Virus record (IMG/VR): IMGVR_UViG_3300042907_001080
Location: 217,659-281,658 of that record
Reading direction: 5' to 3' (one strand)
Length of the DNA stretch: 64,000 bases
Shown: positions 1,510 through 49,114 of the stretch, one piece after another
How positions within the stretch are numbered: the first letter of the stretch is position 1
Layout of the letters: each line of letters starts with the position of its first letter
Made by a program: the position numbers and the translations under genes
Notes under the pieces: generated by a model
Database searches by the model: none
Seen by the model: only the letters and a program-made list of their open reading frames with translations
Told to the model about the DNA's origin: nothing

Positions 1510-1538
1510 AGTATAACATCATCACTGCCAGTTGTCAA
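1510..1538 (-). promoter_or_regulatory. sigma70-type promoter for uvsE (probably leaderless)
   Basis: TTGACA-N17-TATACT; the -10 box ends 6 nt before the ATG. Confidence 0.75.
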
Positions 1539-2328
1539 CTACAAATTTGTCCTGAACATCCTGTGGATTTGGTTCTCCGTGAAACACAGCTATACTACAA
1601 TCTGGAGGAGGTCGCACATCGTGTTTCACTGTTTTGAATCGCCGTCCGCCATGTGCAACAGTGAGTTCATCTCTGCTGCGTATTTCCCATTTGTAACTCA
1701 TAATCCATTCTTTGGGCCAAAATATCATTCTATCTTTGGCTATCTTCCAAATCCAATCTTGATCTCCTTGCAGCCGTTGTGCCTCCGACGGTTTCGATTT
1801 GAATTGATCGTATATATGACCTTGTGTGCCGTGTGTCCATGCCAACACCGAACTGTTGAGATAATTCCAACTGGGGAAAAATTTTCTATTGAAATCATGG
1901 ATACCTATAAAACTGGTAGGATGATATCCAGTGAGCTTATTCATGTTGGCATGTATGACTACATCTAGATCCAGATATAATATTCTTCCCCTGAGAGGTA
2001 ATGCAGAATCAAACATGTGAACCTTGTGCCACCAACCTCTAGCATAATTGGCGTTGGGTTGATATATTTTACGAACTCCGGCAATATCATGTTGATCGTC
2101 GGTGAGACAGGCAAACTCATAAGGCACTGTGAGATGTCTAGACACCATATTACGTAGACGCTCTACATATTCACGACCATATTTGTTACCGAATCTCACA
2201 CACAGCACAGTGATAGGTTCGTTGAGATCCGAAGGCACTACAAGATCGGGATATTCTCCACGTGCTGCCATTTTGGCAGCTCGCTTTTCAGCCTTGGCTT
2301 GTATGCGTTGTTCTTTTGACAATTCCAT
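1522..2328 (-). CDS. GT-A fold glycosyltransferase (GT8-like)
   Basis: GWWHK, ILYLDLDVV (DxD), NSSV, GDQDWI and VFHGEPNP motifs. Confidence 0.75.
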   Translation of the reverse strand: MELSKEQRIQAKAEKRAAKMAARGEYPDLVVPSDLNEPITVLCVRFGNKYGREYVERLRNMVSRHLTVPYEFACLTDDQHDIAGVRKIYQPNANYARGWWHKVHMFDSALPLRGRILYLDLDVVIHANMNKLTGYHPTSFIGIHDFNRKFFPSWNYLNSSVLAWTHGTQGHIYDQFKSKPSEAQRLQGDQDWIWKIAKDRMIFWPKEWIMSYKWEIRSRDELTVAHGGRRFKTVKHDVRPPPDCSIAVFHGEPNPQDVQDKFVVDNWQ

Positions 2329-3133
2329 CTATGGCTACCAAGTCTTTTAAAATATCACCCAGGTCGTCTAGTTTGATCATATTTGGACCATCGCTAGGAG
2401 CACTATCAGGATCTTCGTGACATTCCATAAAGACAGCTGCCACTGAACCTGTGGCTATAGCAGCTCTCGCCAGGTATGGGACCATGGTCCTATCTCCGCC
2501 AGATCTTTCTCCCATTCCTCCAGGCTGTTGAACAGAATGTGTGGCATCAAAGACCACTGGATAGCCAGTGCTTGCCATAATAGGTAGGCTGCGCATATCA
2601 ACCACAAGATTATTGTATCCATGAGTGTATCCTCTTTCGCATAACATAATGCGTTCGTTTCCAGTTGAAGCAATCTTTGATGCGACGTTTTTCATATCGT
2701 GGGGAGCAAGAAATTGTCCCTTCTTGACATTTATAGCACAGCCTGTAGCACCCGCGGCCAACAATAAGTCAGTTTGTCTACATAAAAATGCTGGAATCTG
2801 TAGTATGTCAATGCCAGCATCTGCACATTCCTTTGCCTGCCAGCTTTCATGAATGTCTGTCAAAACAGGCACTCCGAACGTATGTTTAATCGCATTAAGA
2901 ACATCAAGTCCTTCTTTGATTCCTACACCACGTTTGGTAGAAATACTAGAACGATTGGCTTTGTCAAAACTGCTTTTGTATATCAAAGGAATACCTAATA
3001 ATGCTGTGATAGCAATTAATCTTGCACAAGTATCTTCTGCATGATCTTGACTTTCAATTTGGCAAGGTCCAGCAATTAATACGAACGGAAGATTGTTACT
3101 AACAGAGAGAGAATTAATATTAAATGTATGCAT
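2288..3133 (-). CDS. kdsA: KDO-8-phosphate synthase
   Basis: IAGPCQIES, KSSFDKANRSS, QIPAFLCRQTDL, KKGQF, ERG, DATHSVQQPG and SDGPN. Start placed at MHTF (TAAATA-N5-ATG). Confidence 0.95.
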   Translation of the reverse strand: MHTFNINSLSVSNNLPFVLIAGPCQIESQDHAEDTCARLIAITALLGIPLIYKSSFDKANRSSISTKRGVGIKEGLDVLNAIKHTFGVPVLTDIHESWQAKECADAGIDILQIPAFLCRQTDLLLAAGATGCAINVKKGQFLAPHDMKNVASKIASTGNERIMLCERGYTHGYNNLVVDMRSLPIMASTGYPVVFDATHSVQQPGGMGERSGGDRTMVPYLARAAIATGSVAAVFMECHEDPDSAPSDGPNMIKLDDLGDILKDLVAIDGIVKRTTHTSQG

Positions 3134-3141
3134 ATAATTAT

Positions 3142-3333
3142 TTACCAATGCCTAATGGTGTTGGCAACAATAAAGCAACAGGTTATAACGTGAATGACTA
3201 CCCAAAAAGTTTTTAAGAATAAAACAATTCGAGCTTCACGTAGAGTGAGGATAGGCACATCTGGCCTATCCTCATCAGTTTGTCCCATTCTGTGCCCGGT
3301 TGCCCGAGCCCATATTTTTTCAAAACTATTCAT
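3142..3333 (-). CDS. Small hypothetical membrane protein
   Basis: 63 aa with hydrophobic C-terminus; coupled to queD by a 4-nt overlap. Confidence 0.7.
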   Translation of the reverse strand: MNSFEKIWARATGHRMGQTDEDRPDVPILTLREARIVLFLKTFWVVIHVITCCFIVANTIRHW

Positions 3334-3857
3334 CCTTCGTATATTGCAGAATTACCTGCGTGTTCGAATACTTCGGCAGATTTTAGTTTAACGCCTACGC
3401 CAACAGGATAACGTGCTTCAAAAACACGACCATCAGGATGTGTCCAGCCACGGCCTTCTTGATAAGCAGTTAGAATTTCGTTCATAGTCTTGTAAACTAG
3501 TTCGGCAAACATTTCACAGCCTACACCATCTACAATACGTAGATCGATGATGCCCATGTTTTTAAAACCACCTTGGATTTTGTTTAATTCTACAAATGTG
3601 CCACGTTCTGGATCGTCTTTGCCAATAACTAGTGTATGATCAAATTGCCATTCACTCCATTCTTTGAATGCTTTGAGTCCACCAAAGTCCATGACCCAGT
3701 TGCGATCATCTAAGGTTTCTGATTCAAAGATTAGTTTAATGCCAATGGAGTAACCATGTAGCATAGAACAATGTGAGTGCGTTGAACGCCATTGTCTAAA
3801 ACAGCATGACAGCCCTCTGTCGTTGCCGTAAGTTTTTGTTGAAAGATATTTTGCCAT
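3330..3857 (-). CDS. queD: 6-carboxy-5,6,7,8-tetrahydropterin synthase (QueD/PTPS family)
   Basis: HCSMLHGY, WVMDFGGLK, FDHT and C-terminal EVFEH..NSAIY. AAGGAG SD. Confidence 0.88.
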   Translation of the reverse strand: MAKYLSTKTYGNDRGLSCCFRQWRSTHSHCSMLHGYSIGIKLIFESETLDDRNWVMDFGGLKAFKEWSEWQFDHTLVIGKDDPERGTFVELNKIQGGFKNMGIIDLRIVDGVGCEMFAELVYKTMNEILTAYQEGRGWTHPDGRVFEARYPVGVGVKLKSAEVFEHAGNSAIYEG

Positions 3858-3889
3858 CTCTAGTCTCCTTTATATAGGTAGCAAGTTTG

Positions 3890-3936
3890 ATGACTGCAGA
3901 GTGTTTATAGAGGGATGATGCCATAGAGTCCTCTTT
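3890..3936 (-). promoter_or_regulatory. Candidate preQ1-I-like riboswitch in queD leader
   Basis: Minus strand AGAGG-ACTCTATGGCATCATC-CCTCT-ATAAACACTCTGC: a 5-bp P1 plus A-rich tail resembling the preQ1-I aptamer, between promoter and queD SD. Confidence 0.55.
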
Positions 3937-3950
3937 GTGTGTATTGTAAT

Positions 3951-3979
3951 ATTATATTACATTTCTATTTATAATGCAA
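3951..3979 (-). promoter_or_regulatory. sigma70-type promoter with embedded TATAAATA late motif
   Basis: TTGCAT-N17-TATAAT; the spacer begins TATAAATA. Confidence 0.65.
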
Positions 3980-4562
3980 TGAATTTCACATTATTTTTCT
4001 GCCATTCCGGTGGCATCTGCCAGTCTGGTCTATTATAGATCACAAATGTTGTATCGGGATAATACATGAATACTGCGGCAATTTGATAGACCCAATAGCT
4101 GGGATCTACTGCCTGTGATCCCACTCTAGCATAGTTCACGGTGCCTTTGTAGATATTATTCACACTGTGATCGATCGGATACAGATCAAATCCGATCATT
4201 ACAACTTCTTCGTGTCCTAACATCGCTGACAATAGCACAGCATAACCGCCACTGCCCCAATGTTCAGCTTGATCCTTTTTCGATTCACCTCGGGTAGGCA
4301 CCTCAGGTAGAAGATTGATGTTTTTGTTTTTTCTTATTTTTCTGAAGTAGTGATGCCAATGGTCCCGCACATAGATTTCTGTGTCTTTGGTATTGGGATT
4401 ATTTACAGCTTCGTCAGCCATTCTGCGATCGCAACAGACCAAATGATTGACATTTAGATCTCGATGTATGGCATTACATCCTATAAGAACATGATCGGTG
4501 TATGCGCTGATATCAACGCGGCGTCTACTTTCGCCATTGCCAATTACCAATGCTCGAGGCAT
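3969..4562 (-). CDS. CstII/GT42-like or DUF115-like nucleotide-binding transferase
   Basis: LVIGNGES..IGCN and SGGYAVLLSAMLGHEEVVMIGFD resemble the sialyltransferase/MptE-like fold signature. Confidence 0.55.
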   Translation of the reverse strand: MPRALVIGNGESRRRVDISAYTDHVLIGCNAIHRDLNVNHLVCCDRRMADEAVNNPNTKDTEIYVRDHWHHYFRKIRKNKNINLLPEVPTRGESKKDQAEHWGSGGYAVLLSAMLGHEEVVMIGFDLYPIDHSVNNIYKGTVNYARVGSQAVDPSYWVYQIAAVFMYYPDTTFVIYNRPDWQMPPEWQKNNVKFIAL

Positions 4563-5404
4563 TATTCGATTCTACCGAATCCGTTCCATATTCCAGGGTT
4601 GCCTGGCTGAACACATACCCAACCAATTGACTTTCCTGCTTGAGGTGAACTGTTCCATACGATATCGCCTTCGTTAAACGAACCGCTACTAGGAGGTTCA
4701 TTCCCACTAAGATGCAACTTGTCGTTGAATTTTAATGCACCATTTACGTGTAATGTACTACGAGGATCAGGATTGTTGACATTGATGCCCAGGGAACCTA
4801 TGATTGTGACCTTGGTATCGCCCACCGTCGGATTGCCTATGATAACATTACCGCCAGCTTTGATTTGGATCCTAGCTGTGTTATCGGTTCCTAGTTCTAG
4901 GTCAGTGTAATTATAAGTGCCAATTCTTGCAGTGTTGGTACCTTCTGCACCTATTACTATATCCACATTTTGATCTATGATATTAACAGCAGCTTTGGGT
5001 TGATCTGTTCCAAGCCCTAATCGATCAGATATACTGTCATAAACTAGATATTGATTTACACTTAATCCGCCATCTACTATCAATCCCTTGAGACGACCAA
5101 CTTCTCTTAAACTGCTTTTGGTTACGGTAGGACCTAATTCTTTCTCATCAATTAATTTGATGTTGTTGGTGCTTAGATATTTTCCTTTGGCAAGATCTAT
5201 ATTTTCAGATATAAAAAATCTATCTGGATCGGAATTAAAAATGAACTGTTTATTATGTCCCTGTCCATTCCACAGTATGCCTTTGCCATTGATATCGCCT
5301 TTGATGATGATGTAAGGGAATTCAGCAGAGTCAATTTCTTGACCTTCTTGAAATACTTCTTGCAATAGGGTAGTTAGGGCATTTAATTTTTCTTGGCTTG
5401 CCAT
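4562..5404 (-). CDS. Putative virion fibre/structural protein (paralog B)
   Basis: Beta-rich GLGTDQP/LHVNG motifs and C-terminal GDIVWN..P..GWVC..G.PG.W. Start set at MASQEKL. Confidence 0.65.
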   Translation of the reverse strand: MASQEKLNALTTLLQEVFQEGQEIDSAEFPYIIIKGDINGKGILWNGQGHNKQFIFNSDPDRFFISENIDLAKGKYLSTNNIKLIDEKELGPTVTKSSLREVGRLKGLIVDGGLSVNQYLVYDSISDRLGLGTDQPKAAVNIIDQNVDIVIGAEGTNTARIGTYNYTDLELGTDNTARIQIKAGGNVIIGNPTVGDTKVTIIGSLGINVNNPDPRSTLHVNGALKFNDKLHLSGNEPPSSGSFNEGDIVWNSSPQAGKSIGWVCVQPGNPGIWNGFGRIE

Positions 5405-5405
5405 G

Positions 5406-6500
5406 TTATGAATTTCCAATTTTACCGAAAGGCGACCATATCCCAGGAGATCCGGTTTGAATGCACACCCAACCCACATAAGAGTTCATTCTCGGTTGGA
5501 TGTTCCATATAATGTCACCTTCGTTATACGATCCATTTGTTGGATAAGTGCTGTCGTATTTTTGCAGTCTATTGTTGAATCTCACTGCGCCATTTACATG
5601 CAGATCAACTTCTGGATCCGGAGTCGAAACCCTTACTGAAAGTTTACCATGTACATGTATTTGGGTAGGAGCCAGTTTGGGATTACCTAATATAATATTG
5701 CCACTCGACGAGATGATTATTCTTGCAGTGTTGTCAGTGCCTAATTCTAAATTATTACTGGCGTAAGTGCCAATGAATGCTTTTACGGTGTCTTTGGTGC
5801 CGAGAACTATCTCTACTCCGTCATCTAGGATGCTGACAGCTGCGTTAGGATTTTCAGTGCCTAGTCCTAGTCTGCTAGTGTTGGCATCGAATACCATAAA
5901 CTGACCCACCGATAATCCGCCATCTACTATCAGTCCATTAAGCCGACCAACTTCTCTGAGATTGCTTTTGGTTATAGTAGGACCTAATTCTTTCTCATCA
6001 ATTACTTTGATGTTGTTGACAGTGATGCTTTTGCCTTTGGCAAGATCGATGGATTCAGATGAAAAGAATCTATCCGGACTGGAGTTAAATATAAACTGTT
6101 TGGTATATCCTTGGCCACTCCAAAGCAGTCCTTTGCCGTCGATGGTATCACCTGAAAACACAATAGGCACATCTTTCTCAAATTTGATATCTGCACGTAT
6201 CTCATCCACCTCTAGAATCTTGGTTTTTAGGGTGCCTGCGACTGTGAGATTATCGATGTTTTCTACGAACAGATTAGTGACAGTGACACCATCATTGTTC
6301 ACTGTTAATTGAGTTTTTACAGCGGTATCTGTGATACCGGTGCTGGCAAAGTTATGTATTTTGCCTCCGGAAATATGATCCCCCGATAGAGATCGAAATG
6401 GCATTTTTCTTGCGATTTCTTTGACATCTGGGGCAGCGGTTTGTGCGATCGAGTTGATCTCATCGCCTAGTGCGGCTAATAAATTATTGACATTACTCAT
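5406..6500 (-). CDS. Putative virion fibre/structural protein (paralog A)
   Basis: Colinear with the downstream gene (shared KQFIFNS.PDRFF, ELGPT.TKS.LREVGRL.GLIVDG, LELGTDNTARI). TAAATA upstream. Confidence 0.65.
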   Translation of the reverse strand: MSNVNNLLAALGDEINSIAQTAAPDVKEIARKMPFRSLSGDHISGGKIHNFASTGITDTAVKTQLTVNNDGVTVTNLFVENIDNLTVAGTLKTKILEVDEIRADIKFEKDVPIVFSGDTIDGKGLLWSGQGYTKQFIFNSSPDRFFSSESIDLAKGKSITVNNIKVIDEKELGPTITKSNLREVGRLNGLIVDGGLSVGQFMVFDANTSRLGLGTENPNAAVSILDDGVEIVLGTKDTVKAFIGTYASNNLELGTDNTARIIISSSGNIILGNPKLAPTQIHVHGKLSVRVSTPDPEVDLHVNGAVRFNNRLQKYDSTYPTNGSYNEGDIIWNIQPRMNSYVGWVCIQTGSPGIWSPFGKIGNS

Positions 6501-6522
6501 AGTAATGTATTTATCCGCCAAC

Positions 6523-6549
6523 AAAAAAGCGGACCAAAGCCCGCTTTTT
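6523..6549 (-). terminator. Intrinsic terminator (bidirectional-looking)
   Basis: AAAAAAGCGG-ACCAAAGC-CCGCTTTTT hairpin with A/T tracts on both sides. Confidence 0.75.
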
Positions 6550-12517: not shown

Positions 12518-13498
12518 ATGACACAAGACTTCACAAAGATACCATTCCATAACATAACAAGATTTGGTCAACGCACCATGTTGCATCGCCCGTTATTTTC
12601 TACCAGTTGGATTTTGGGCCGTTTCTGTAATTATAACTGTTCTTACTGTTGGCCCTATGCTAGATCGGACAAGGTAGATCACCAGCCTTTAGAAGTATAT
12701 ACTAATACTGTAGATGAAATCAAACGACAGGCTCGACTAAATGGCTTCAATGAATTCCATTGGAGTTTCAGTGGCGGTGAACCTACTGCTTACCGACAGC
12801 TACATGATTTGATTAAACACCTTGACGAAACAGAAAGCACATACCAAAGTATACACATGACAACCAATTTAAGTCCTGGAAGTAAATGGTGGAATACCTG
12901 GTGTGCCAACACAGCATTACTACAACGCAGAAGTATCACAGCATCATTTCATGATGAGTTTGCTCGAGAGCAGGAATTCGGTGACAAGTGTCTACAGTTA
13001 TTGCATGAGCGTGTGCATGTCACAGTCAATCAAGTAATGGTCCCGGAAAAGTTTTATGAGCTTTATGAACGCATGTCTCGGCTACATGCTCGTGGAATCA
13101 ATGTTACGCTCAAACCGCAAAGTGATCCTACAGCGAGTCGTGTAGTCGATGGCTACACAACAGAAATGATTGATCTATTACAGACTGGATTTCCTCAAAC
13201 ATCACAAGGCGAAGACGTTTATCAAATAGCATTGTATGATACAGACAACAAAGAATATTTGTTCGATCAAGCAGAAAGATTTAATGCTTTTGGTTTTAAC
13301 AAATTCCAAGGTTGGAGTTGCAATAGTGGGTATCAAAGTGTTATAATAAGAGGTAATGAAGTGAAACGATCATATAGCTGTCACGACCGACTATTAGGAA
13401 CACTAGAGAGCTTTGAGCTTTTTAAAAAACCAACAGTTTGTATAACACCTAGTTGTGTCAGCAGTGCTGATTCAAAGATACCAAAATGTATAAACTAG
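12518..13498 (+). CDS. Radical SAM protein
   Basis: CNYNCSYC, SGGEPT; C-terminal Cys-rich SPASM/twitch-like region. Confidence 0.9.
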   Translation: MTQDFTKIPFHNITRFGQRTMLHRPLFSTSWILGRFCNYNCSYCWPYARSDKVDHQPLEVYTNTVDEIKRQARLNGFNEFHWSFSGGEPTAYRQLHDLIKHLDETESTYQSIHMTTNLSPGSKWWNTWCANTALLQRRSITASFHDEFAREQEFGDKCLQLLHERVHVTVNQVMVPEKFYELYERMSRLHARGINVTLKPQSDPTASRVVDGYTTEMIDLLQTGFPQTSQGEDVYQIALYDTDNKEYLFDQAERFNAFGFNKFQGWSCNSGYQSVIIRGNEVKRSYSCHDRLLGTLESFELFKKPTVCITPSCVSSADSKIPKCIN

Positions 13499-14463
13499 AA
13501 AACATAAAAGACATACATCTAGAATTAACAAGTAAGTGTCAAGCACGATGCCCAATGTGTCCTCGCCGAGTTAACGGAGGGATACTAAATCCTATTATGT
13601 CGTTAAATGAGATAACACTAGAACAATTTAAAGAATGGTTCTCAGATGAATTTATAAATCAACTGGATAGTCTGTTTATGTGCGGCAATTTAGGTGATCC
13701 TATTATTGCTGAAGATTGTTTAGAGATATTTCAATACTTAAAAGAAACTAATCCTAACATACGATTGAGCATGCATACAAATGGTAGTGCTAGAAATATA
13801 CACTGGTGGAAAAAATTAGCAAAGTATAAAGTTAAAGTTACATTTGGAATAGACGGTTTAGAAGATACACACAAGTTATATCGAATAAGCACTAATTGGA
13901 ACACCATTATAAAAAATGCCGAGTCATTTATAAAAGCTGGCGGCGAAGCAGAATGGCACATGTTAGTGTTTAAGCATAACGAACATCAAATTGAAGAATG
14001 CCGTGCGCTAAGTCACAAACTTGAATTTAAAAAATTCACAACCAAGCATACTAGTCGTTTTAAAGATAACAAATTTCATGTATTGGACGAAACCGGCAAG
14101 ACTGTTAATATTCTTTATCCTACTAAACTTAGCACTTCACATACAGTAAATGTGTTGTCAGTATTACCAGCAGAGATACAATGCAAGGCAAAGAAATATA
14201 GTCAACTATACATAAGTGCAGACGGAGGAGTTAGTCCGTGTTGCTGGTTGGATTTTTCCTGGCAGTTGCCTAACCAGGACAATAGAATAAATTATATGGA
14301 TAAAATTGGAGTTTATCCTAACCTAAATAAACAGTCGTTAATAGATATATTTAATTCTGGTTTCTTTAGTAAGATTGAAAGTACCTGGTCAGCCGTTCCT
14401 TTAATGGAATGCGGCAAACAATGTGGACATTTTGATAAGCTAGGAGAGCAATTTGTTAGTTGA
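13486..14463 (+). CDS. Radical SAM/SPASM protein
   Basis: CQARCPMC, GNLGDP, HTNG, DG.VSPCC. Confidence 0.9.
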   Translation: MYKLENIKDIHLELTSKCQARCPMCPRRVNGGILNPIMSLNEITLEQFKEWFSDEFINQLDSLFMCGNLGDPIIAEDCLEIFQYLKETNPNIRLSMHTNGSARNIHWWKKLAKYKVKVTFGIDGLEDTHKLYRISTNWNTIIKNAESFIKAGGEAEWHMLVFKHNEHQIEECRALSHKLEFKKFTTKHTSRFKDNKFHVLDETGKTVNILYPTKLSTSHTVNVLSVLPAEIQCKAKKYSQLYISADGGVSPCCWLDFSWQLPNQDNRINYMDKIGVYPNLNKQSLIDIFNSGFFSKIESTWSAVPLMECGKQCGHFDKLGEQFVS

Positions 14464-15046
14464 TACAGAACACTTACATCACTGGATGCAAGCCATAAGA
14501 CAAAGCCCAGATCCTATGAGGACCATGGATGCATTCTGGTCTGGACAACTTAAAAGCAAAGAATGGTTGATCTCAAATTTAAGAAAACACATTAATAAAT
14601 TTGTAGGTATTGATATACATGGTGGCTGGGTTGGTGTACTAGCCAGTATGTTGTTCCAAAGTGATATCCCTATTATTAATATTCGTAGTGTTGATATTGA
14701 CCCTACCTGCGAATCTATTGCAGTTAACATGAACAAGATTGAAGAAATGGTTGGCAAGTTTCGTGCTGTCACAGCAGACATGTGTGCTCTTCGCAGTGAT
14801 GCAGATGTCATTATCAACACCAGTTGTGAACACATAACACAAGACCAATATGACATATGGTTAAGCGGAATGCCACATAGCAGCCTACTAGCATTGCAAA
14901 GCAATAATTATAATATAGATGAACATGTTAGGATTGCTAACAGTTTAGAAGAGTTTAAAAAACAATGCCATCTGGACAATATTTTGTATGCCGGGGAACT
15001 TGATTTGCCGTTGTACAAACGATTTATGATTATAGGAAAACAATGA
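14453..15046 (+). CDS. SAM-dependent methyltransferase-like protein
   Basis: IHGGWVG, SVDIDP, INTSCEH; TTG start. Confidence 0.6.
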   Translation: MLVDTEHLHHWMQAIRQSPDPMRTMDAFWSGQLKSKEWLISNLRKHINKFVGIDIHGGWVGVLASMLFQSDIPIINIRSVDIDPTCESIAVNMNKIEEMVGKFRAVTADMCALRSDADVIINTSCEHITQDQYDIWLSGMPHSSLLALQSNNYNIDEHVRIANSLEEFKKQCHLDNILYAGELDLPLYKRFMIIGKQ

Positions 15047-15777
15047 TAGAATTAGGGTTAGTTAAATGGTATAATGACGCAAAGAGATACGGGTTTATTA
15101 AAGCAGACTCGGATGGAGAATCTATTTTGGCACAGAGTCATTCTATTGTGGAAGAACCAAAGACTTTGAGAGAATTTCAACGTGTAACTTTTGAAAGATA
15201 TGTAACTGATAATGGCCTAGAAGCACGTACTATAAATATCGCCATGAACCCAGATTTATCGATTTACGAACACGAAGTTATATCATTGAAAAAACAACGA
15301 CTTCATCTTTCTTCATTTGTAGGACATGTCTTATTAGTGGTTAATACTGCCAGCCGATGCGGACTTACACCTCAGTACGAAGGATTAGAAAAATTATTTC
15401 AAAAATATAAAGATAAAAAATTTACAATCCTGGCATTTCCGACAAACAATTTCGCAGGACAGGAGCCTAATACAAATGCCGAAATTTTAGATTTTTGTGA
15501 GACAAATTATAATGTAAGTTTTTATGTTATGGAAAAATCAAATATTGTAGAACAGGATAGTTCAAGCCCTGCACAATTCGCCGAAACTGCACCTAGAGAA
15601 ATAAATTCTTTTTATAAAGACCTTGCCACCAGAACAAATGTTTTACCGCAGTGGAATTTCCACAAGTATCTAATTAATCGTACGGGTTCTATTATTAAAA
15701 GTTTTGATCATTTGACTCAACCAGACAATGATGTATTAATTAACGCAATCGAAGAATTTTTGGATAGTAACGTATGA
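15043..15777 (+). CDS. Cold-shock domain fused to Cys glutathione peroxidase
   Basis: N-terminal GLVKWYNDAKRYGFI (CSD RNP1). C-terminal VVNTASRCGLTPQY, LAFPTNNF.GQEP and WNFHKYLI (GPx). Confidence 0.88.
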   Translation: MIELGLVKWYNDAKRYGFIKADSDGESILAQSHSIVEEPKTLREFQRVTFERYVTDNGLEARTINIAMNPDLSIYEHEVISLKKQRLHLSSFVGHVLLVVNTASRCGLTPQYEGLEKLFQKYKDKKFTILAFPTNNFAGQEPNTNAEILDFCETNYNVSFYVMEKSNIVEQDSSSPAQFAETAPREINSFYKDLATRTNVLPQWNFHKYLINRTGSIIKSFDHLTQPDNDVLINAIEEFLDSNV

Positions 15778-16700
15778 AAATATTAATGACTGGATCATCG
15801 GGATTTATCGGATCTCACTTAGCACCACTTTTAGAAAAAGACCACACAGTTCATCATCTCAAAAGCGATCTAACAGATCACAAGAGTGTTCAGCTAGAAG
15901 TAGCTTCTGTACAACCAGATATCATTGTGCACCTAGCTGCACGTACAGAAGTAGAACAAAGCTTCTATGAACAAATTACCTTTAGTGAAATAAACTATAT
16001 AGGAACAGTTAATTTAATTGAAGCAGCCGCCTCTGTTAAAAATTTAAAGAACTTTGTGTTTGCTAGTACTATGGAAGTTTATGGTTGGCAACCTATTAGT
16101 GATACTGTAAAAAATGGCGCCATACCTAAAGTATTTGAAACATTTGATGAGAACACTCAGCCTAACCCCAATGCTCCTTATTCTGTAGCCAAATATGGAT
16201 GTGAGAAATATTTAGAATACGCTTACAGATGTTATGGATTGCCATTTACTGCTATACGTCAAACAAACAGCTATGGTCGTAAAGATAACAAGTTTTTTGT
16301 TACAGAACAAATTATTAGTCAGATGCTAGAAAATTCCAAAGAAGTAAATCTTGGATATGCTGAACCATATAGAAATTTTATTTTTATTGACGACCTATTA
16401 GATGCTTGGATTACAGTTATTACAAATCCTGATAAAGTAAACAGTGGACTAATACTTACTATTGGTCCTGATGCTCCTATAAAGATTAGGGATTATGCAC
16501 AAAAAATTGCCAAAAAATTAAACTGGCAAGGAACGATTAATTGGGATACTAAATTGTTCAGGCCTGGGGAGATTTACTGGCTTAATAGCAATCACAATCT
16601 AATAACTAAATTAACTGGATGGTATCCTAAAGTCAGTTTAGACGAGGGGCTAGATCAAACTATTAAAATCTGGAAAGAAAAATATGATAGTAGAACATAA
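15774..16700 (+). CDS. NDP-sugar epimerase/dehydratase (extended SDR)
   Basis: TGSSGFIG, HLAA, ST.EVYG, YSVAK (YxxxK), RNFIFIDD. Confidence 0.9.
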   Translation: MKILMTGSSGFIGSHLAPLLEKDHTVHHLKSDLTDHKSVQLEVASVQPDIIVHLAARTEVEQSFYEQITFSEINYIGTVNLIEAAASVKNLKNFVFASTMEVYGWQPISDTVKNGAIPKVFETFDENTQPNPNAPYSVAKYGCEKYLEYAYRCYGLPFTAIRQTNSYGRKDNKFFVTEQIISQMLENSKEVNLGYAEPYRNFIFIDDLLDAWITVITNPDKVNSGLILTIGPDAPIKIRDYAQKIAKKLNWQGTINWDTKLFRPGEIYWLNSNHNLITKLTGWYPKVSLDEGLDQTIKIWKEKYDSRT

Positions 16701-17316
16701 GTTAAACGATGTACCGAGAATATCTGTTTTTGATAATGTACTATCTGCTGAATTTTGTAGAGGTATGATAGAAAAACATTCCAATGCTGGAATGAATTCT
16801 AATTCTGGTTATCAAAGTCGTGTTGAGTCGTATGCCCAAGTTACAGAAGAAGTTGAAAATAGAGGAATTAGTCTAGGTGTTGATCCCTATGATTATGATA
16901 TAATAGCAACAGCTATTGTTAATGTTGCTAAAATTCCATATTCTCACATAGAGGCTATTGATATTTACAACTATCACGAAGGACAGTATCTAGCTTATCA
17001 TCACGATTACTGTTATGACCCTAGACAAATCAACTATTATAAAAACGGTGGCGACAGAGTTGGAACCGGTATTTTTTATTTTAATGATGATTTTGTAGGC
17101 GGAGAAACTTATTTTCCTAAATTTGATGTATCTATTACTCCTAAGACTGGTTCCTTTTTGTATTTTGAACAATGCTATGACGAAGCAACTAATTGGGACA
17201 CAATACACGAAAGCAAACTAATTACCAAAGGAACTAAGTGGATCGCTAGTTGCTTTTTTAGTGATAGGCCTAGAGTAGGATGGTCTAGTAGAGATCATTT
17301 GTATGCTAACGGATAA
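16684..17316 (+). CDS. Prolyl-4-hydroxylase-like 2OG-Fe(II) oxygenase
   Basis: YHHD, GGDRVGT, GGETYFP, IHES..I.KG.KW. Confidence 0.85.
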   Translation: MIVEHKLNDVPRISVFDNVLSAEFCRGMIEKHSNAGMNSNSGYQSRVESYAQVTEEVENRGISLGVDPYDYDIIATAIVNVAKIPYSHIEAIDIYNYHEGQYLAYHHDYCYDPRQINYYKNGGDRVGTGIFYFNDDFVGGETYFPKFDVSITPKTGSFLYFEQCYDEATNWDTIHESKLITKGTKWIASCFFSDRPRVGWSSRDHLYANG

Positions 17317-18007
17317 TTGGATTCCTTTTTACAAATATAATGATCAAGGTGTGCCTGGATGCATGTCTCAGCAAACCTATGAACCGTTAATAAATCCGGA
17401 AGGAACTGTATACTGTGCCAACTACGATCATAATAATCTGTATCAACGTAAATGGCAACCAGACCGTGTGGGTTACACTCAAGACATTGTTGAATATTTT
17501 TTTAACAAAGAAGTTGGATATGCACACAAATTTAGCAACAAGCTATGGGCGCCGGAAATTATAGATATAGATTATGTTAGCAAACGTATTTTTTATAAAT
17601 GGTATGGGCCCACTTGCAACGAATTAATATATACAGGCAGAACTTTACCATCTGATTGGAAATTACAACTTCGAAATATCATGATGGATTGTTATAATGA
17701 AGGAGTTTACAAACTTACAATGTATCCACATTGTCATTACTATGATAACAGCGGAATTATGCACACGCTAGATATGTATGGGTGCGTTGAAGTAGATGAT
17801 CCGTTTATTGAAGCAAAGTATATGGATGGGATAATTCACGAAACCGCTAAATTTAGACTAGACGAGACCGGACCTAAAAACAATAATAGATATGATTTAG
17901 AAAAAATGTTCTTCAATAGTTTATGCACCCACGTAAAATGGGGAGAATGCGATTTAAATTTTGTCTATCAAAATATAATTGGAGATAGCGATGAAATATA
18001 TAGGTAA
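17303..18007 (+). CDS. Kinase-like fold protein (degenerate motifs)
   Basis: KEV....APEIIDID..Y and GVYKLTMYP; paralog of 28592-29287. Confidence 0.45.
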   Translation: MLTDNWIPFYKYNDQGVPGCMSQQTYEPLINPEGTVYCANYDHNNLYQRKWQPDRVGYTQDIVEYFFNKEVGYAHKFSNKLWAPEIIDIDYVSKRIFYKWYGPTCNELIYTGRTLPSDWKLQLRNIMMDCYNEGVYKLTMYPHCHYYDNSGIMHTLDMYGCVEVDDPFIEAKYMDGIIHETAKFRLDETGPKNNNRYDLEKMFFNSLCTHVKWGECDLNFVYQNIIGDSDEIYR

Positions 18008-18623
18008 CTGCGCAGATAAAATAGATTGGAATGAAGTAATTAAATTATGCCAAGAGAGCGTAACAGGAGATAGAAACACTGTGGTCTCTGTGGTTGAAAG
18101 ATCCGAAGTTAATTTACAGAATCGAGAACCTATGCAGGCCAAGGTTTTATTGTCGGTAGCAGAACAAATAGCCAACGAACAATTGCTTCAAGAGTATAGA
18201 AAAGTGATAGGAGATTGGCGTGATGCTGGATGTGACCTGGATAAAATTTATTGGTATGATTACTATCCAGGGGATCATTATCCAGAAAGTATATCAGATA
18301 CATTTGCTGCCATACTAGGAATTCGCCCATTAAGAGTTTTTGTAAGTGAAGTATATCCGGGTATTACAGTTCCCTATCACTGGGATGTAGAAGATAAGGG
18401 ACCAGAATGGTTAAAAAAATACGGAATGCTTTATAGATATACCTGCTGTATAGATGTGCCGAGGGTCGGAAGTGTATTAATCGTTGACGATCATTGTTTA
18501 TATGATTTTAAGCAAGGAGACATTTTTGAATGGGATAGTTATAGAAACTATCATTCAGCTGCCAACGGCGGCGAACACATACAGTATTATTTTCACATGT
18601 TAGGATATAAAATAAAATGTTAG
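17991..18623 (+). CDS. Cupin/AspH-like Fe(II) oxygenase
   Basis: PYHWD...YHSAAN (HxD..H). Confidence 0.7.
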   Translation: MKYIGNCADKIDWNEVIKLCQESVTGDRNTVVSVVERSEVNLQNREPMQAKVLLSVAEQIANEQLLQEYRKVIGDWRDAGCDLDKIYWYDYYPGDHYPESISDTFAAILGIRPLRVFVSEVYPGITVPYHWDVEDKGPEWLKKYGMLYRYTCCIDVPRVGSVLIVDDHCLYDFKQGDIFEWDSYRNYHSAANGGEHIQYYFHMLGYKIKC

Positions 18624-19162
18624 AAAGAGTTGGTAACTGTTCAAAAATTATAGATTGGAACGAAGTTATAAAAGAGATTGCTGAACAACGACCGGCCTAT
18701 ATCGGACCTAGCCACAAGGAAGATGATCCAATTCCGGGCCTTAAAGAAGTAACAGATTTGTGGAAGCGTTCGGGATTCAAAACTGTTGCTGATGGTGGAA
18801 CAGTGGAATGGGACATGTTTTTGCCTCATACAAATTTTAATATTTCTATCGCTGAAAAATTTTGTGAGTTTGTTGGATTGAAAACGTATACAAGCTGCTG
18901 GATTAGTAGAATAAATCCTGCACGTTGCTCACCTTGGCATTGGGATGTCCATGACGATGAAGTAAATTTATCTCAAAGAACAGACATAGTTCGATATCAT
19001 TGTCATATAGGACAACCGACACACGGTCATGTTTTAATAGTAGATAATTTTTGTTTATATAAACAGCCTCAGGGAGAAATATATAAATGGCCATCTAGAA
19101 CAACTTGGCATTGCGGATTAAACAGTGGGCTAACTCCGAAGTATCTTTTTAATATATGGTGA
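18617..19162 (+). CDS. Cupin/AspH-like Fe(II) oxygenase
   Basis: PWHWD...WHCGLN; paralog of the preceding gene (shared GNC..IDWNEVI). Confidence 0.7.
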   Translation: MLERVGNCSKIIDWNEVIKEIAEQRPAYIGPSHKEDDPIPGLKEVTDLWKRSGFKTVADGGTVEWDMFLPHTNFNISIAEKFCEFVGLKTYTSCWISRINPARCSPWHWDVHDDEVNLSQRTDIVRYHCHIGQPTHGHVLIVDNFCLYKQPQGEIYKWPSRTTWHCGLNSGLTPKYLFNIW

Positions 19163-19166
19163 TGAT

Positions 19167-19367
19167 ATGATCAATGAAAAATACAGTAATGAAGATGTTC
19201 CTATTCAAGATACATTTTATATGCAAAAGTTTATGGAGATTCAACGTCAAAATGTTGTATTATCAAATAAACTACGAGACTTATATGAAATTCTTGAGAT
19301 CCGTGATGTTGTAGAAATGCATTTTGGGGATAAGTTTTTTAATATCTTAAATGATACACCTGCATGA
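19167..19367 (+). CDS. Small hypothetical protein
   Basis: 66 aa; ATGA overlap with downstream rSAM gene. Confidence 0.6.
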   Translation: MINEKYSNEDVPIQDTFYMQKFMEIQRQNVVLSNKLRDLYEILEIRDVVEMHFGDKFFNILNDTPA

Positions 19368-20764
19368 ATAAAATTAAACACTGGCAAGAGAAAATTGAAT
19401 CAGTATCAGGAAGCAAAACTTTTTGCATATTGCCCTGGATACATTTTGCCACACGTCCCAACGGCGACATGCGACTATGTTGTAATGCTAACAGTAGTGG
19501 AGCAGGAACGGATCACGAAATTGGTCTAGTAAAAAACGAAACAGGTCGTCCTGCTAATTTTGGACGGGAAACTCCTATGAGCGCATGGAACAACAAATAC
19601 ATGCGAGATGTACGTTTAACTATGCTAGAAGGAAAGATTCCTTCTAGCTGTAGTAAATGTATTGCTGAAGAGTCTAAAGGTGTTGCTAGCAAACGTATTT
19701 GGGAAACAGGTACTTGGATAGAAGAAGGTCTTGATGTTGAAGAGCTTGTTAAACAAACAGAAGAAAATGGAACAATTCCTGAACGTCTTGTTTATCTAGA
19801 TTTAAGATTAGGACATACTTGTAATCTTAAGTGTGTTATGTGTAGTCCTCATGATAGTAGCATGTGGGTTTCTGATCATAAAAAGATATATCCTCTATTT
19901 CAGACTAAAGAACTTAAAGATCAAATGGCATGGGATCAATCAGAGTTTAACAATAAATGGCACGAAAATCCAGACTTCTGGAAAGAAATGTATACTCAGA
20001 TTCCTAATCTAAAACAAGTATACTTTGCAGGCGGCGAACCTTTGCTTATTAAGGAGCATAAACTGTTCCTTGAAGAAATTGTTAGACAAGGATACGCGGA
20101 CAAGATCCTTGTACGATACAACACAAATGGATTATTAGTAAATGACGAAATTATTGAACTCTGGAAAAAATTCAAAAAAGTTAAAGTAGGGTTTAGCATC
20201 GATGCTGTCGGCGACCGTAATTACTATATACGCTATCCTAGTGATTGGGTTACTATCGAACGTAATCTTCACAAGTTAGATAACACTCCTGGCAACATAC
20301 AAGTTAGCATTGCCACTGCTATACAAATACTAAACATCAAACACTTGCCTGAACTTGCCAAGTGGAAGATACAACAGAATTTTAAGAAAGTAAACTTTGA
20401 AAATATAACTGGTGGAATTGAAGCCGGCGGCGGAATTGTTAACATGCACTTGTTGTATATACCCACGTTCTTAAGTATTAGATGTTTGCCTGAATATGAT
20501 AAAGAACAAGTGCGTAAGAGCTTTGCTGATCTTGCTACATGGTTGTATACTAACTACAGACAAGATGAAGACTTTTGGAAAAACAATCCTTACGGATGGA
20601 AACGCTGGCAGGCAGTATTAGACTTTATGGATGCCGAAGATCACACTGCTCAGTTACCTGCATTTGTTGAATATATTGAAAAGATAGAAGCTATACGTGA
20701 TACAGATTTTGTTAAGACTTTTCCTGAGCTAGCACATTTGCTACAGTCCCCAATCTTATCTTAG
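19364..20764 (+). CDS. Radical SAM protein with N-terminal twitch/SPASM-like domain
   Basis: FCILPW..GDMRLCC, CSKC, CNLKCVMC, AGGEP, YNTNG. Confidence 0.9.
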   Translation: MNKIKHWQEKIESVSGSKTFCILPWIHFATRPNGDMRLCCNANSSGAGTDHEIGLVKNETGRPANFGRETPMSAWNNKYMRDVRLTMLEGKIPSSCSKCIAEESKGVASKRIWETGTWIEEGLDVEELVKQTEENGTIPERLVYLDLRLGHTCNLKCVMCSPHDSSMWVSDHKKIYPLFQTKELKDQMAWDQSEFNNKWHENPDFWKEMYTQIPNLKQVYFAGGEPLLIKEHKLFLEEIVRQGYADKILVRYNTNGLLVNDEIIELWKKFKKVKVGFSIDAVGDRNYYIRYPSDWVTIERNLHKLDNTPGNIQVSIATAIQILNIKHLPELAKWKIQQNFKKVNFENITGGIEAGGGIVNMHLLYIPTFLSIRCLPEYDKEQVRKSFADLATWLYTNYRQDEDFWKNNPYGWKRWQAVLDFMDAEDHTAQLPAFVEYIEKIEAIRDTDFVKTFPELAHLLQSPILS

Positions 20765-21806
20765 GATTTTTAAAAATAGGATCAGCAAGCATTTTCTGAA
20801 ACTCTGCGTATTCAGGATGAGTTGTCTTCCAAATGGTGCGCTGTTCATACGTGGTCTTATCCCAAGTATTCCAATCAATAACCAATTGAAAATCTACACT
20901 ATAGAAATTTGGAAATCTGTCCAGGACTAATTGTGCGTAATCTTTCATTTCTTTGTAGTTTAGATCTTGAACCACATATTGTGTTAGGACATAGATATTA
21001 GGATTATTAGATATCTCATTGTTTATATAATCACAATTGTCTAACAATGTTGGCCAGTGTCCTCCACGGCGAACAACATCATATGTTTCTTCACGAGCTG
21101 CATCAAAGCTGATGCGTATAGCTCTAATTTTACTGTGCCATTTAGATATTCTGCGCCAATACGCAGGTGTAAGCATTACGCCGTTTGTCTGTAAGTCTAA
21201 TATTAAATTGGGCCAAGGTGTTGGATCAAAGTTAACTAAAAAGTCTCGGAATATCTTAGAACCAAACGGATCACCACTGCCAGTGATATCTAGTGTAATA
21301 TGTTTGTCATGCGGTTTGTCAAATACAGCATTAATAATTTTGTAGTGTAATTCTAGTTTACGTTCGTAATCAACACCTTCGTAATCGTATATCTTTTCAG
21401 TGCGACAACTAGGACAAGTTAAATTACAACTAGCATCGTTCTCAAACATAATATGTGTTGGAAATTCTGCTGGCTTAGGTGTATCTTCTATGTTGGGTAA
21501 TCGATTGTCAGATATGTCGCCGCACACTGTATGATTACAATACCTAAAACTTCCATCTAGTATAGACTCACGAATTATAGTTGCTACTTCCCCGTGCCAT
21601 ATTTCTTCAAACGATTGTTCATTTAAATTACCAATACTATAAGGCAACCAGCTTGTGCAGCACATCCAACAACTACCATCGTCCCTAATAGACAACGTTT
21701 CAAAAGGTTTATTACAAAATTTGCCTTGTAAATTTTTTTGTTTAACTTTAAGATTAGCTAAATCATGCCCGCTATCTATTTTAAGCATTATAGTTTTATT
21801 TTTCAT
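20712..21806 (-). CDS. Radical SAM protein with N-terminal SPASM-like domain
   Basis: FCNKPF..CWMCC, CNLTCPSC, GSGDPF, QTNG. Confidence 0.9.
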   Translation of the reverse strand: MKNKTIMLKIDSGHDLANLKVKQKNLQGKFCNKPFETLSIRDDGSCWMCCTSWLPYSIGNLNEQSFEEIWHGEVATIIRESILDGSFRYCNHTVCGDISDNRLPNIEDTPKPAEFPTHIMFENDASCNLTCPSCRTEKIYDYEGVDYERKLELHYKIINAVFDKPHDKHITLDITGSGDPFGSKIFRDFLVNFDPTPWPNLILDLQTNGVMLTPAYWRRISKWHSKIRAIRISFDAAREETYDVVRRGGHWPTLLDNCDYINNEISNNPNIYVLTQYVVQDLNYKEMKDYAQLVLDRFPNFYSVDFQLVIDWNTWDKTTYEQRTIWKTTHPEYAEFQKMLADPIFKNPKIRLGTVANVLAQEKS

Positions 21807-22902
21807 ATATAGGAATTATAGTTGTTGCTTTCCACAGGTCTTCAAAGTCTGTGAACTCTTTGGCTTTAGGCACACACATACCACATCCGCATCTTTGGTT
21901 AGGGCAAATAATTGGCGTTACCGGTTTAGATAACATATCTTTAACTTGCGAGATAATAGTTTCAGTATCTCGCAAATTTCCAATAGGACCCCGGCCTGTG
22001 TGTGTTGCCTGACATGTTTGATGATGGAACACATTGCCTGTATGCTGCTCAACATGCATAAAAAACCAGTTAACTGTGCAATACCAGTCTTTAAACCAGT
22101 TGTTCACTAATTTGATATCTTGCCATTCATCTTCAACTTTACCCTGTGTGCATCTGCTACCACAACATGCACGACCTACGTTTGTACCCTCGGCAGATGT
22201 AGATGCACTACGAGGTTGCCCCATCCATTCAAAGAACCAGTTCTGTTGTTCTTCTGTGTATTCGTGGCTTGTTCTACGTTGATTGCCGTCGGCATCTTGA
22301 AACCATCCCTTTCGAACAATATTTCCATCTCCGATTGGCACAGGATTCAGTCGTGAAATTCCTTTAGATTTGAGTAGATTACATACTTCAACCGCCTCGT
22401 CAAAATAGTCGCAATGTAGCATTACATTTGCCTGAACACTCATCCCGGCATCATGCAGGCCTATAATATTTTTAATGCTTCTATCTTTTAATTTCTGATC
22501 AGCTTCACTATGCCAACTAACAGTAACGTGAACAAAATTATCTAAAATTCTTTTAGTAAATTGAGGCCCCCAAGAGCCGTTAGTAGTCAACCCTAACGCA
22601 AAATTTCCTTGTGTTTTTATATATTCTATCAATGGCCAAAAATTAGGATTGGCGGTAGGTTCGCCACCGGTAAAATCTATGCTGGTTATATCACCATATA
22701 GTCTTTTTGAATTGTACAGATCTGCATAGCTCTTGATAAAATCAAAAGTAGTTTTTAATTCTTCAAAGCTAGGATACGGACTATAGTTGTTATGACGTGT
22801 ACTTTCACAGTAAGAACAGTCGTAATTACATCTGCGTAACATTTCCCAGGTTACAATAAATGGTGTGGGATTTTTTAATTTAATTGCTGTTGTTTTTATC
22901 AT
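21796..22902 (-). CDS. Radical SAM protein
   Basis: CNYDCSYC, TGGEPT, TTNG; C-terminal CPNQRCGCGMC. Confidence 0.9.
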   Translation of the reverse strand: MIKTTAIKLKNPTPFIVTWEMLRRCNYDCSYCESTRHNNYSPYPSFEELKTTFDFIKSYADLYNSKRLYGDITSIDFTGGEPTANPNFWPLIEYIKTQGNFALGLTTNGSWGPQFTKRILDNFVHVTVSWHSEADQKLKDRSIKNIIGLHDAGMSVQANVMLHCDYFDEAVEVCNLLKSKGISRLNPVPIGDGNIVRKGWFQDADGNQRRTSHEYTEEQQNWFFEWMGQPRSASTSAEGTNVGRACCGSRCTQGKVEDEWQDIKLVNNWFKDWYCTVNWFFMHVEQHTGNVFHHQTCQATHTGRGPIGNLRDTETIISQVKDMLSKPVTPIICPNQRCGCGMCVPKAKEFTDFEDLWKATTIIPIYEK

Positions 22903-23792
22903 TGTTTTATCTTTGTTAACGGAATGTCTGCTGCGCAGGTGCAGTAATTCCTATCGCATATAATAGGGTTTATAGGTATTGAAAATGTACCTGCATATAT
23001 GTTACCAAGACTACCACCGACTCTACAAGTCGCTCGGTGCACATCGCCGTCCCAATTTATCATTAGGCTTTCTATGCCTGCGTTGCAAGTCCAGCCCTTG
23101 AATTTGTTTAGATGCAATTTTATTACGTCGTTGGCATGCATAATTTCTACATCGTCTATTCTACAGTTAGCCTTTGCCGTGGCATTCTGTGAGAGAATCC
23201 ATTCTAAGTCGTTACCATCATACCGCATATCGTCAAACACATTATGATCGCCCTCAGTCCAGCGTATTCTACGCACAGCAAATCTAATCCCTTTTTCTCG
23301 GAACTCTTTGACTACTTTGCGAACACTGTCCATATGATCGTAGTGAGCCATTATGTTAACAAAAAAGTCTGTTTGAGTTTTGTCATAGAACTCGTTAATT
23401 GTTCTCATCACACGCTGCCAGTCATATTCAAAATGCAGACTAAACACTAGGTGATTAAAATACATTTCGTTTTGCAAATACCAGTTAGCAGATCGAGTTC
23501 CGTTGGTTGTTAAGTTGACCCAGAATATATCCTTGCGTTTAAAGTAGTCTAGTAGATCTTCTATATCGGGATGCACACAAGGTTCGCCACCTGTTAAACT
23601 AATACGTAACGGTTTTCCAATTTCGCATAGTTTATCAACAGTTGTTTCTAGGATGTTAATATCTGTATGCGAACTAAAATTATCATGTATGCTTGAAGGG
23701 CAATATGTACAGTCGTAGTTGCAACGTTTGCCTAAATTCCATTCAACTTTTATTTGATCTTGATGCGGCCAAGAACTGGTTATTTTATACAT
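22899..23792 (-). CDS. Radical SAM/SPASM protein
   Basis: CNYDCTYC, TGGEP, WTCNAG..CDRNYCTC. Confidence 0.9.
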   Translation of the reverse strand: MYKITSSWPHQDQIKVEWNLGKRCNYDCTYCPSSIHDNFSSHTDINILETTVDKLCEIGKPLRISLTGGEPCVHPDIEDLLDYFKRKDIFWVNLTTNGTRSANWYLQNEMYFNHLVFSLHFEYDWQRVMRTINEFYDKTQTDFFVNIMAHYDHMDSVRKVVKEFREKGIRFAVRRIRWTEGDHNVFDDMRYDGNDLEWILSQNATAKANCRIDDVEIMHANDVIKLHLNKFKGWTCNAGIESLMINWDGDVHRATCRVGGSLGNIYAGTFSIPINPIICDRNYCTCAADIPLTKIKQ

Positions 23793-25032
23793 ACTGTTTA
23801 AATTCTGGTATAACTGCTAACAAATCTTGATTGCGAGTAGAGTCTAATGCAAAATTAAAATCTAAAAAGTCTTGCCACAAATTATTTTGATCCTTTGCTT
23901 GTAGATAGTTAATGTTATCTTGTATTTGTTGATGCGTAACTGTGCCTAACAGCGGGTTCTTTTTAACTGCGCTCCATGTATCTACTTGTGACTTAACTGC
24001 TAGAAGTTTTGTAATTGCTAGTGCTTTTAATTCTTGTGGTAACACTTGTGCTGACAGACAGTTGGGATAACTAACACGGTGGCTATAAAATATAATGTCC
24101 ATGGTGTTAATAAAATAATCAATACATTCTGCGGCTTGTAGTATGTTGCCAGCTTGTGCTGTAAATGCCCCAACTACACGACTCACGTTAGGAATTTTTT
24201 TTATTTCTTTAATGTTTGCTTCAACTTGATTAAAGTCGCTGTTACCGCGAATGTAATTGTAAACATCGTGAATGCCATCAAGGCTGACATTAACGGCAAT
24301 GCTTCTAAAATATGGCCAGTAGTCATGTATAGTCCTTCCTTTGCTAATTCCTAGCGTTGTGCCATTTGTGGCGTATTTTAATTCAATGTTAGCACCATAA
24401 GGCTTTAACATGTCTAAAATTTTATAATGTTGAGGATCCATTAGAGGCTCTCCACCTGCAAACTCTACTCGTCTAAAATGAGGTAGAAGTTTTTCAAAAC
24501 TGGTCCACCAGTTGTCGCTATCGTCAAACTCTCCGATATACTTTCCGGGATTATCTACAAGCTCTGTAATAGTGTGTACTAGGAAATTATTTTCTTTCTT
24601 ATAGAACGGAGTTACTTTGTCCCAGTCTTTCCAGTTAGTGCTATCTAACGGATTACACATGCGACACTTCAAGTTACACAAGTTGTTAAGTTTAATCTCC
24701 ATTGTAGGAAATTCAAACGGCATAATTTCTTGTAGCGGTGTATCGGGATATAAGTTAATACGTGCTTCTGGAATAACTCCGTTAATATGACGTTGGCGCA
24801 AACTTTCTACACCCTGGTCTTCTAAGTCAAAGCAAGGTTTACAAACCTCAGGCCGTTCTCCGCATAAGACTTGTTTGCGAACAAGTTGCATGGTTTCATT
24901 ATTCCATATTTCTTCTAGTGTATTATTTTGTATGAACCCAACCGGCGCACTACGACAACAGACTTTGACGGCTCCGTCTTCGCGTGTTGCTAACCCTGTA
25001 AAAGGGTGCATACAAAATGTTTTACTTTGCAT
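23785..25032 (-). CDS. Radical SAM protein with N-terminal twitch domain
   Basis: FCMHPF..VKVCC, CKPC, CNLKCRMC, AGGEP. Confidence 0.9.
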   Translation of the reverse strand: MQSKTFCMHPFTGLATREDGAVKVCCRSAPVGFIQNNTLEEIWNNETMQLVRKQVLCGERPEVCKPCFDLEDQGVESLRQRHINGVIPEARINLYPDTPLQEIMPFEFPTMEIKLNNLCNLKCRMCNPLDSTNWKDWDKVTPFYKKENNFLVHTITELVDNPGKYIGEFDDSDNWWTSFEKLLPHFRRVEFAGGEPLMDPQHYKILDMLKPYGANIELKYATNGTTLGISKGRTIHDYWPYFRSIAVNVSLDGIHDVYNYIRGNSDFNQVEANIKEIKKIPNVSRVVGAFTAQAGNILQAAECIDYFINTMDIIFYSHRVSYPNCLSAQVLPQELKALAITKLLAVKSQVDTWSAVKKNPLLGTVTHQQIQDNINYLQAKDQNNLWQDFLDFNFALDSTRNQDLLAVIPEFKQYV

Positions 25033-26328: not shown

Positions 26329-26368
26329 GGATATATTTACACGAGTTATACTAGCACATAAATATTTC

Positions 26369-29287: not shown

Positions 29288-29314
29288 ACAAATACTTATC
29301 AGCTAAGTATTAAC

Positions 29315-35876: not shown

Positions 35877-35915
35877 ATTAATAATTATCATAAAAAAATT
35901 CAGTTAAATACAGAT

Positions 35916-37594: not shown

Positions 37595-37606
37595 GATACG
37601 TATATT

Positions 37607-40863: not shown

Positions 40864-40966
40864 AATAGAACGATACACCGATTTTAGAAATCTTGAAGAT
40901 TTGCACAAAACTGCACAAACCCTTATATCTAATACCAATTATGAGAATTGATAAGGATTTTATTAA

Positions 40967-48288: not shown

Positions 48289-48362
48289 TGGTGCTCCAAC
48301 CAAGAATCGAACTTGAAATACATCCTTACCAAGGATGCGTTATGCCATTTAACTATAGGAGC
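48289..48362 (-). tRNA. tRNA-Thr(GGT)
   Basis: Cloverleaf; anticodon arm CATCC-TTGGTAA-GGATG; CCA encoded. Confidence 0.9.
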
Positions 48363-48927: not shown

Positions 48928-48935
48928 GGTATCCT

Positions 48936-49009: not shown

Positions 49010-49034
49010 ATTGTCTTTACTTATCAACTAACTT

Positions 49035-49111: not shown

Positions 49112-49114
49112 AAT

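Follow-up and report, generated by a model that had tools for sequence, protein, structure and literature searches.

A conserved pseudoknot RNA in the leader of a phage queD-like gene, a candidate ON-type translational riboswitch

The leader of a queD-like gene in an uncultured phage carries a small predicted pseudoknot RNA, found in hundreds of uncultured lake and ocean phages, which resembles the preQ1-I riboswitch in shape but appears to be wired to turn translation on rather than off. We analyzed a 64,000-nucleotide stretch of DNA (the window), which is the last 64 kb of the 281,658-bp IMG/VR phage record IMGVR_UViG_3300042907_001080 (positions 217,659 to 281,658). The element lies on the minus strand, on which the genes around it also run, in the 111-nt gap between a 197-aa ORF (4562..3969, a PHROG of unknown function) and a 175-aa ORF (3857..3330). 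The 175-aa protein matches Pfam PTPS at 6.6e-13 and PHROG 2389, a QueD-like 6-pyruvoyl-tetrahydropterin synthase family, at 2.5e-32, whereas its match to NCBIfam QueD (36 bits) is below the cut-off of that model. Aligned to E. coli QueD (PDB 4ntm), it keeps the catalytic Cys; however, both this protein and the two other motif-linked subfamilies carry C-x3-HGY where canonical QueD has C-x3-HGH, one of the zinc-binding histidines. A first-pass annotation made from the sequence alone had pointed to a promoter followed by AGAGG and CCUCU in this leader, and had read them as a variant preQ1-I-like riboswitch sensing a 7-deazaguanine or pterin-pathway metabolite. The observation holds, since the sequence is present exactly as described, with AGAGG at 3934..3930, a 16-nt loop at 3929..3914, CCUCU at 3913..3909 and the tail AUAAACACUCUGC at 3908..3896, together spanning 3934..3896, followed by the Shine–Dalgarno (SD) sequence AAGGAG at 3870..3865 and the AUG at 3857..3855. 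The interpretation is supported only in part, as described below.

Taken alone, the leader of the window does not fold unusually well compared with shuffled sequences (z = -0.76), so the evidence is comparative and not thermodynamic. We therefore compared the leaders of homologous genes. A protein-seeded scan of viral contigs returned 80 loci whose QueD-like genes are 74–100% identical to that of the window, and their upstream regions carry the same element with compensatory changes in the stem. In an alignment of 46 distinct sequences made with MAFFT (A1), P1 is 100% paired with two pairs changing on both sides, and a loop–tail helix, P2, is 82–85% paired with every one of its seven pairs changing on both sides. 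None of 500 shuffles reaches the observed score, and sliding the partner strand drops pairing to 28–51%. A covariance model built from A1 finds the element once in the whole 281,658-bp genome, at this site, with 49.5 bits, although the sequence of the window was itself in the training alignment; no second copy was found before folE or elsewhere in the genome. The same model finds the element immediately upstream of the gene in 72 of 80 and in about 72 of 80 loci that were not used to build it, which were seeded with two other QueD-like subfamilies, a 168-aa freshwater type and a 149-aa marine type (alignments A2 and A3). P1 was not part of the search model, so its pairing in A2 and A3 (98–99%, with four covarying pairs) is independent of the model. 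On the other hand, the model contains P2, which biases the P2 counts in A2 and A3, although A1 gives the same answer. Across the three alignments P1 is 98–100% paired and P2 79–89% paired, the structure is 85–90% paired, and changes on both sides occur in 9–12 pairs. A chance hairpin, or the terminator of the upstream gene, is refuted by these hundreds of conserved copies with compensatory changes; in addition, no U-run follows the stem and a consensus scan found no terminator in the leader, the one terminator-like site (3821..3808) lying inside the coding region and within chance expectation.

In total, about 200–260 distinct copies were collected, depending on the filter, nearly all directly upstream of QueD-like genes of three diverged subfamilies, on IMG/VR phage contigs and in a few MAG bins. 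A 19-base degenerate pattern of the motif hits the window once, with 0.00 expected, and hits viral contigs at least 120 times. Of these 120 hits, 115 have a perfect P1 and 112 sit directly before a QueD-like ORF. The exceptions are either miscalls in our ORF assignment or operons in which a cupin or a methyltransferase gene precedes the PTPS gene, and one is a 306-aa PTPS-domain protein. The element is abundant, since three protein-seeded scans each returned at least roughly 600 rows. The same pattern in 185,579 species genomes gave 30 hits, about the number we estimated from pattern degeneracy and database size, of which only seven are real. All seven lie on short MAG contigs before QueD-like genes, four in Bacteroidota bins (loci L089, L096, L103 and L112), two in the Rickettsiales MAG MED657 (L094 and L104) and one in a Nitrospira bin (L107). 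They are probably binned phage DNA, and the binning may hint at hosts or may be contamination; thus, we found no evidence of a bacterial chromosomal version in these genomes. Among cultured phages, blastn with two leaders found only chance matches, and the covariance model with filters off found nothing in the ten cultured phages with the closest QueD-like genes.

The predicted fold is a 45-nt H-type pseudoknot. First, P1 consists of 5 bp, A-G-N-G-G with C-C-N-C-U, formed in the window by 3934..3930 and 3913..3909, and the compensatory forms AGAGG/CCUCU, AGUGG/CCACU, AGCGG/CCGCU, UGCGG/CCGCA, AGUCG/CGACU and ACCGG/CCGGU are seen. L1 is ACUCU (3929..3925) in the window and N-C-U plus 1–6 variable bases in the family, with the C and U at positions 2 and 3 nearly invariant; L1 and the P2 5′ strand together measure 8–14 nt. 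P2 pairs AUGGC (3924..3920), which copies the start-codon region, with GUCAU (3894..3890), and it is extended by two invariant pairs, CA (3917..3916) with UG (3898..3897), giving 5–7 bp plus the 2-bp extension (7–10 bp in the comparison with preQ1-I). The extension was revealed by three distinct relatives in which its A:U pair becomes G:C. The two parts of P2 are separated by a U–C mismatch, and the window has one extra A–A mismatch because one base is missing on each strand, leaving A3919 and U3918 unpaired on the 5′ strand and C3896 and A3895 on the 3′ strand. L2 consists of the variable base U3915 and C3914 immediately 5′ of the P1 3′ strand; this C is invariant in A1 and in the model-aligned A2 and A3, and the base before it is U, C or A. 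Finally, L3 is the A-rich sequence AUAAACACUC (3908..3899), ten bases with A invariant at positions 3, 5 and 7, ending in an invariant UC. Several of the invariant tallies in the wider family set, including part of those for L3, were imposed by our own search pattern. The P2 proposed in the first-pass annotation, GCA with UGC, is paired in only 15.6% of alignment cells and was rejected.

To place the element among known RNAs, we compared it with the preQ1 riboswitches, a search that the first-pass annotation had itself set as a test. Rfam at gathering thresholds on the whole window returned only 27 tRNAs, and at E<=10 there was no relevant hit, including preQ1-I, -II and -III (RF00522, RF01054 and RF02680), on window positions 3700–4100 or on 15 loci with diverse variants. 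In the whole genome the only RF00522 hits score 9.7–11.9 bits, all elsewhere, against a gathering cut-off of 39 bits. As described in PMC11625349, preQ1-I riboswitches (RF00522, types I–III) are H-type pseudoknots in which a cytosine just before the P1 3′ strand, preceded by U or A, pairs with the ligand, a uridine of L1 and an adenine of L3 read its other edges, and an A-rich L3 lies in the P1 minor groove. The present element shares the topology with P2 between the hairpin loop and the 3′ tail, a 5-bp P1 whose top pairs are G–C, the cytosine at the position of the specificity base, an A-rich L3 directly after P1 and a place before a 7-deazaguanine pathway gene. However, L1 is not the 2–3 U-rich bases of preQ1-I, P2 is 7–10 bp rather than 3–4 bp, L2 is 2 nt, and L3 ends in UC followed by UGC where preQ1-I uses an adenine to read the ligand, so the analogy of the pockets may fail; in addition, the present element is found only in uncultured phage contigs. 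All preQ1 classes repress (PMC11625349), whereas here the P2 3′ strand is the anti-RBS rather than the SD itself. Thus, an ordinary preQ1-I riboswitch, or a mild variant that binds preQ1 or preQ0 and represses queD, is very unlikely despite the shared layout and the link to a queuosine-type gene, and we describe the element as a preQ1-I-like fold with an inverted platform rather than as a preQ1-I member.

A further difference from preQ1-I is the expression platform (3885..3853). In the minimum-free-energy (MFE) fold of the leader of the window, GUCAUC (3894..3889), the anti-start strand, pairs with GAUGGC (3858..3853), which contains the AUG, and CCU (3878..3876) pairs with AGG of the SD. The same hairpin is predicted in every one of the 46 first variants, and in 230 of 234 distinct copies the P2 3′ strand pairs with the region from the SD to AUG+8, against 98 of 234 when the eight bases of the strand are shuffled. 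Four different platform designs keep the rule that the P2 3′ strand is the 5′ arm of the sequestering helix: GUCAUC with GAUGGC, GCCAUUGUU with AACAAUGGC, AAGUCAUC with GAUGACUU in the marine type, and CCUAUG with CAUAGG, which covers the SD. Where the second codon differs (GCA versus ACU), the anti-start strand and the P2 5′ strand both change with it, showing that the P2 5′ strand is a decoy copy of the start region. P2 and the hairpin cannot coexist, and both are under selection. Rough energies of the two states are similar, about -5.9 kcal/mol for the P2 duplex and -8.4 kcal/mol for the hairpin, so extra stabilization of the pseudoknot would be needed to open the ribosome-binding site. The computed advantage of the hairpin, about 2.5 kcal/mol, together with the position of the element at the very 5′ end in many copies, would also fit a ligand-free switch, in which the pseudoknot forms first during transcription and gives a short window of translation before the mRNA relaxes into the closed hairpin, or which responds to temperature or Mg2+ or simply protects the 5′ end. 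We consider this unlikely, because it does not explain why about 15 unpaired positions are invariant over three protein subfamilies only 35–60% identical to each other, nor why the element occurs only with this one enzyme family.

The best reading of these data is that the pseudoknot is the aptamer of an undescribed ON-type translational riboswitch candidate for a phage 7-deazaguanine pathway gene. In this view, the hairpin buries the SD and the AUG and keeps translation off, the pseudoknot frees the ribosome-binding site and turns translation on, and the conserved unpaired bases at the P1/P2 junction would form the pocket. We are highly confident that the element is a conserved pseudoknot/hairpin translational switch, and consider it more likely than not that a small molecule drives it. 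The comparative data establish the structure, its conservation, the mutually exclusive platform and the exclusive link to QueD-like genes, whereas the binding of a small molecule that shifts the balance, and its identity, are inferred. The element has the conserved aptamer-like fold with covarying helices and invariant junction bases in a 5′ leader, the platform sharing a strand with it and the consistent association with genes of one pathway that are expected of a riboswitch. Because of the invariant C, the ligand most likely has a guanine-like Watson–Crick face, which points to a 7-deazaguanine or pterin intermediate of the FolE–QueD–QueE pathway, possibly on the substrate side (dihydroneopterin triphosphate). 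ON logic is unexpected for a biosynthetic gene if the ligand were the end product and fits a substrate-side or pool signal better, so the guess at the ligand is weak. In ON-type translational riboswitches such as the Vibrio vulnificus add adenine riboswitch, ligand-stabilized folding of the aptamer likewise withdraws a strand that would otherwise pair with the SD/AUG region; however, that aptamer is a three-way junction, and here it is a pseudoknot with a decoy strand that mimics the start-codon region itself.

A protein-bound operator is a possible but less likely alternative, in which a phage protein or the QueD-like enzyme itself binds the pseudoknot or the hairpin. Phages use such operators (PMC10690425), as in the T4 gene 32 leader, where a pseudoknot upstream of the ribosome-binding site nucleates cooperative binding of the encoded ssDNA-binding protein, gp32, and represses translation. 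The element travels strictly with the QueD-like gene across different phage backbones, as an autoregulatory site would. However, the encoded protein here is a small-molecule enzyme and the RNA has an explicit two-state platform, covarying helices with invariant small junction loops are the usual signature of a metabolite aptamer, and T-fold enzymes are not known to bind RNA. Moreover, when another gene is inserted between the motif and the PTPS gene, the motif stays at the start of the operon.

A more far-reaching and tentative reading, possible but short of even odds, is that this is a new riboswitch class confined to uncultured aquatic phages, an offshoot of or convergence on the preQ1-I fold, which senses a 7-deazaguanine or pterin pathway metabolite, perhaps the QueD substrate or CDG, with an altered pocket, and switches on translation of the first committed enzyme of phage DNA 7-deazaguanine modification. 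Few riboswitch classes are known from phages, and none of the known preQ1 classes activates expression (PMC11625349). Literature searches found no prior description of the element, although it could be an unnamed entry in a 2023 catalogue of more than 10,000 phage RNA candidates, the tables of which we could not compare (PMC10690425). The element is small and has a clean two-state design; it would give a direct handle on how phages time or meter synthesis of the 7-deazaguanine bases that protect their DNA from restriction, and it offers a natural comparison for how the preQ1-I scaffold can be rewired in logic and possibly in ligand, as well as a compact ON-switch part for engineering.

Upstream of P1, the window has a promoter-like site (3979..3951) with a perfect -10, TATAAT (3956..3951), 17 nt after TTGCAT (3979..3974). 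The -35 is weak and the consensus scan did not list the site; the inferred transcript start is near 3944, about 10 nt before P1. Among relatives, 74 of 262 copies have a sigma70-like site, often TTGAC-N17-TATAAT, against 9% of shuffles, and its -10 mostly ends 6–10 nt before P1, so the aptamer would sit at the very 5′ end of the mRNA. A perfect palindrome, GTAATAT-A-ATATTAC (3946..3960, minus strand), overlaps the -10 hexamer and could be an operator; it is seen only in the window-type leaders (for example loci L004–L007, L035, L037–L041 and L046). In addition, TATAAATA (3966..3973, minus strand), identical to the T4 late-promoter consensus, overlaps the stop codon of the upstream ORF about 32 nt before P1. 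Contigs from four lake RNA libraries cover 3834..3991 and parts of the gene, reaching 3984–3991 and thus beyond the inferred start, and none covers 4005..4473 in the upstream ORF. These are contigs of close relatives in which DNA carry-over cannot be excluded, so they are only weak support for transcription and do not settle the 5′ end.

Regarding the pathway, the genome encodes FolE, a radical-SAM protein whose best NCBIfam hits are QueE families, all below cut-off, and a xanthine/hypoxanthine-type phosphoribosyltransferase, all within about 5 kb (record positions 157650–162975; locus L285 3651..8975). There is a weak QueC-like match and no TGT/DpdA match in the record, which is estimated to be 80% complete. 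Around the 120 motif loci, tblastn finds FolE in 38, QueE in 33, the phosphoribosyltransferase in 20, QueC in 1 and DpdA in none. The set of QueE, phosphoribosyltransferase, QueD and FolE is also annotated in Synechococcus phage BUCT-ZZ01. This gene set, with no DpdA found in the genome, hints that the deazapurine base is turned into a nucleotide rather than exchanged into DNA. In cultured Pseudomonas, Acinetobacter and Rhizobium phages, by comparison, the homologous QueD-like gene lies inside QueE–QueC–QueD–FolE–DpdA clusters, in several cases without a leader, which ties the protein family to 7-deazaguanine DNA modification (PMC10516641).

Directly downstream of queD (1522..3333, minus strand) lie a 63-aa ORF (PHROG 1679), a DAHP-synthase-I/KdsA-family gene (Pfam 1e-68) and a glycosyltransferase (PHROG 1962). 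The order of PTPS and then DAHP-synthase-like genes recurs in another motif-bearing contig (L370, 4291–6406), and relatives of the 63-aa ORF and of the glycosyltransferase lie near the motif in 26 and 25 of 120 loci, respectively. On the upstream side (4562..6524, minus strand), two adjacent ORFs of 305 and 372 aa share tail-fibre or virion-protein C-terminal matches (PHROGs 21471, 6002 and 2617) and are probably paralogous fibre genes. The genome also has nineteen matches to the Radical_SAM Pfam family, at record positions 230269–261755 (about 12600..44100 of the window) and 145138–158288; fourteen lie inside the window within about 32 kb, an unusually dense and unexplained run of such enzymes. 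Lastly, the 27 tRNA genes (Rfam tRNA, 39–72 bits) form a cluster of about 6 kb at 48292..54592 on the minus strand, a very large tRNA set for a phage.
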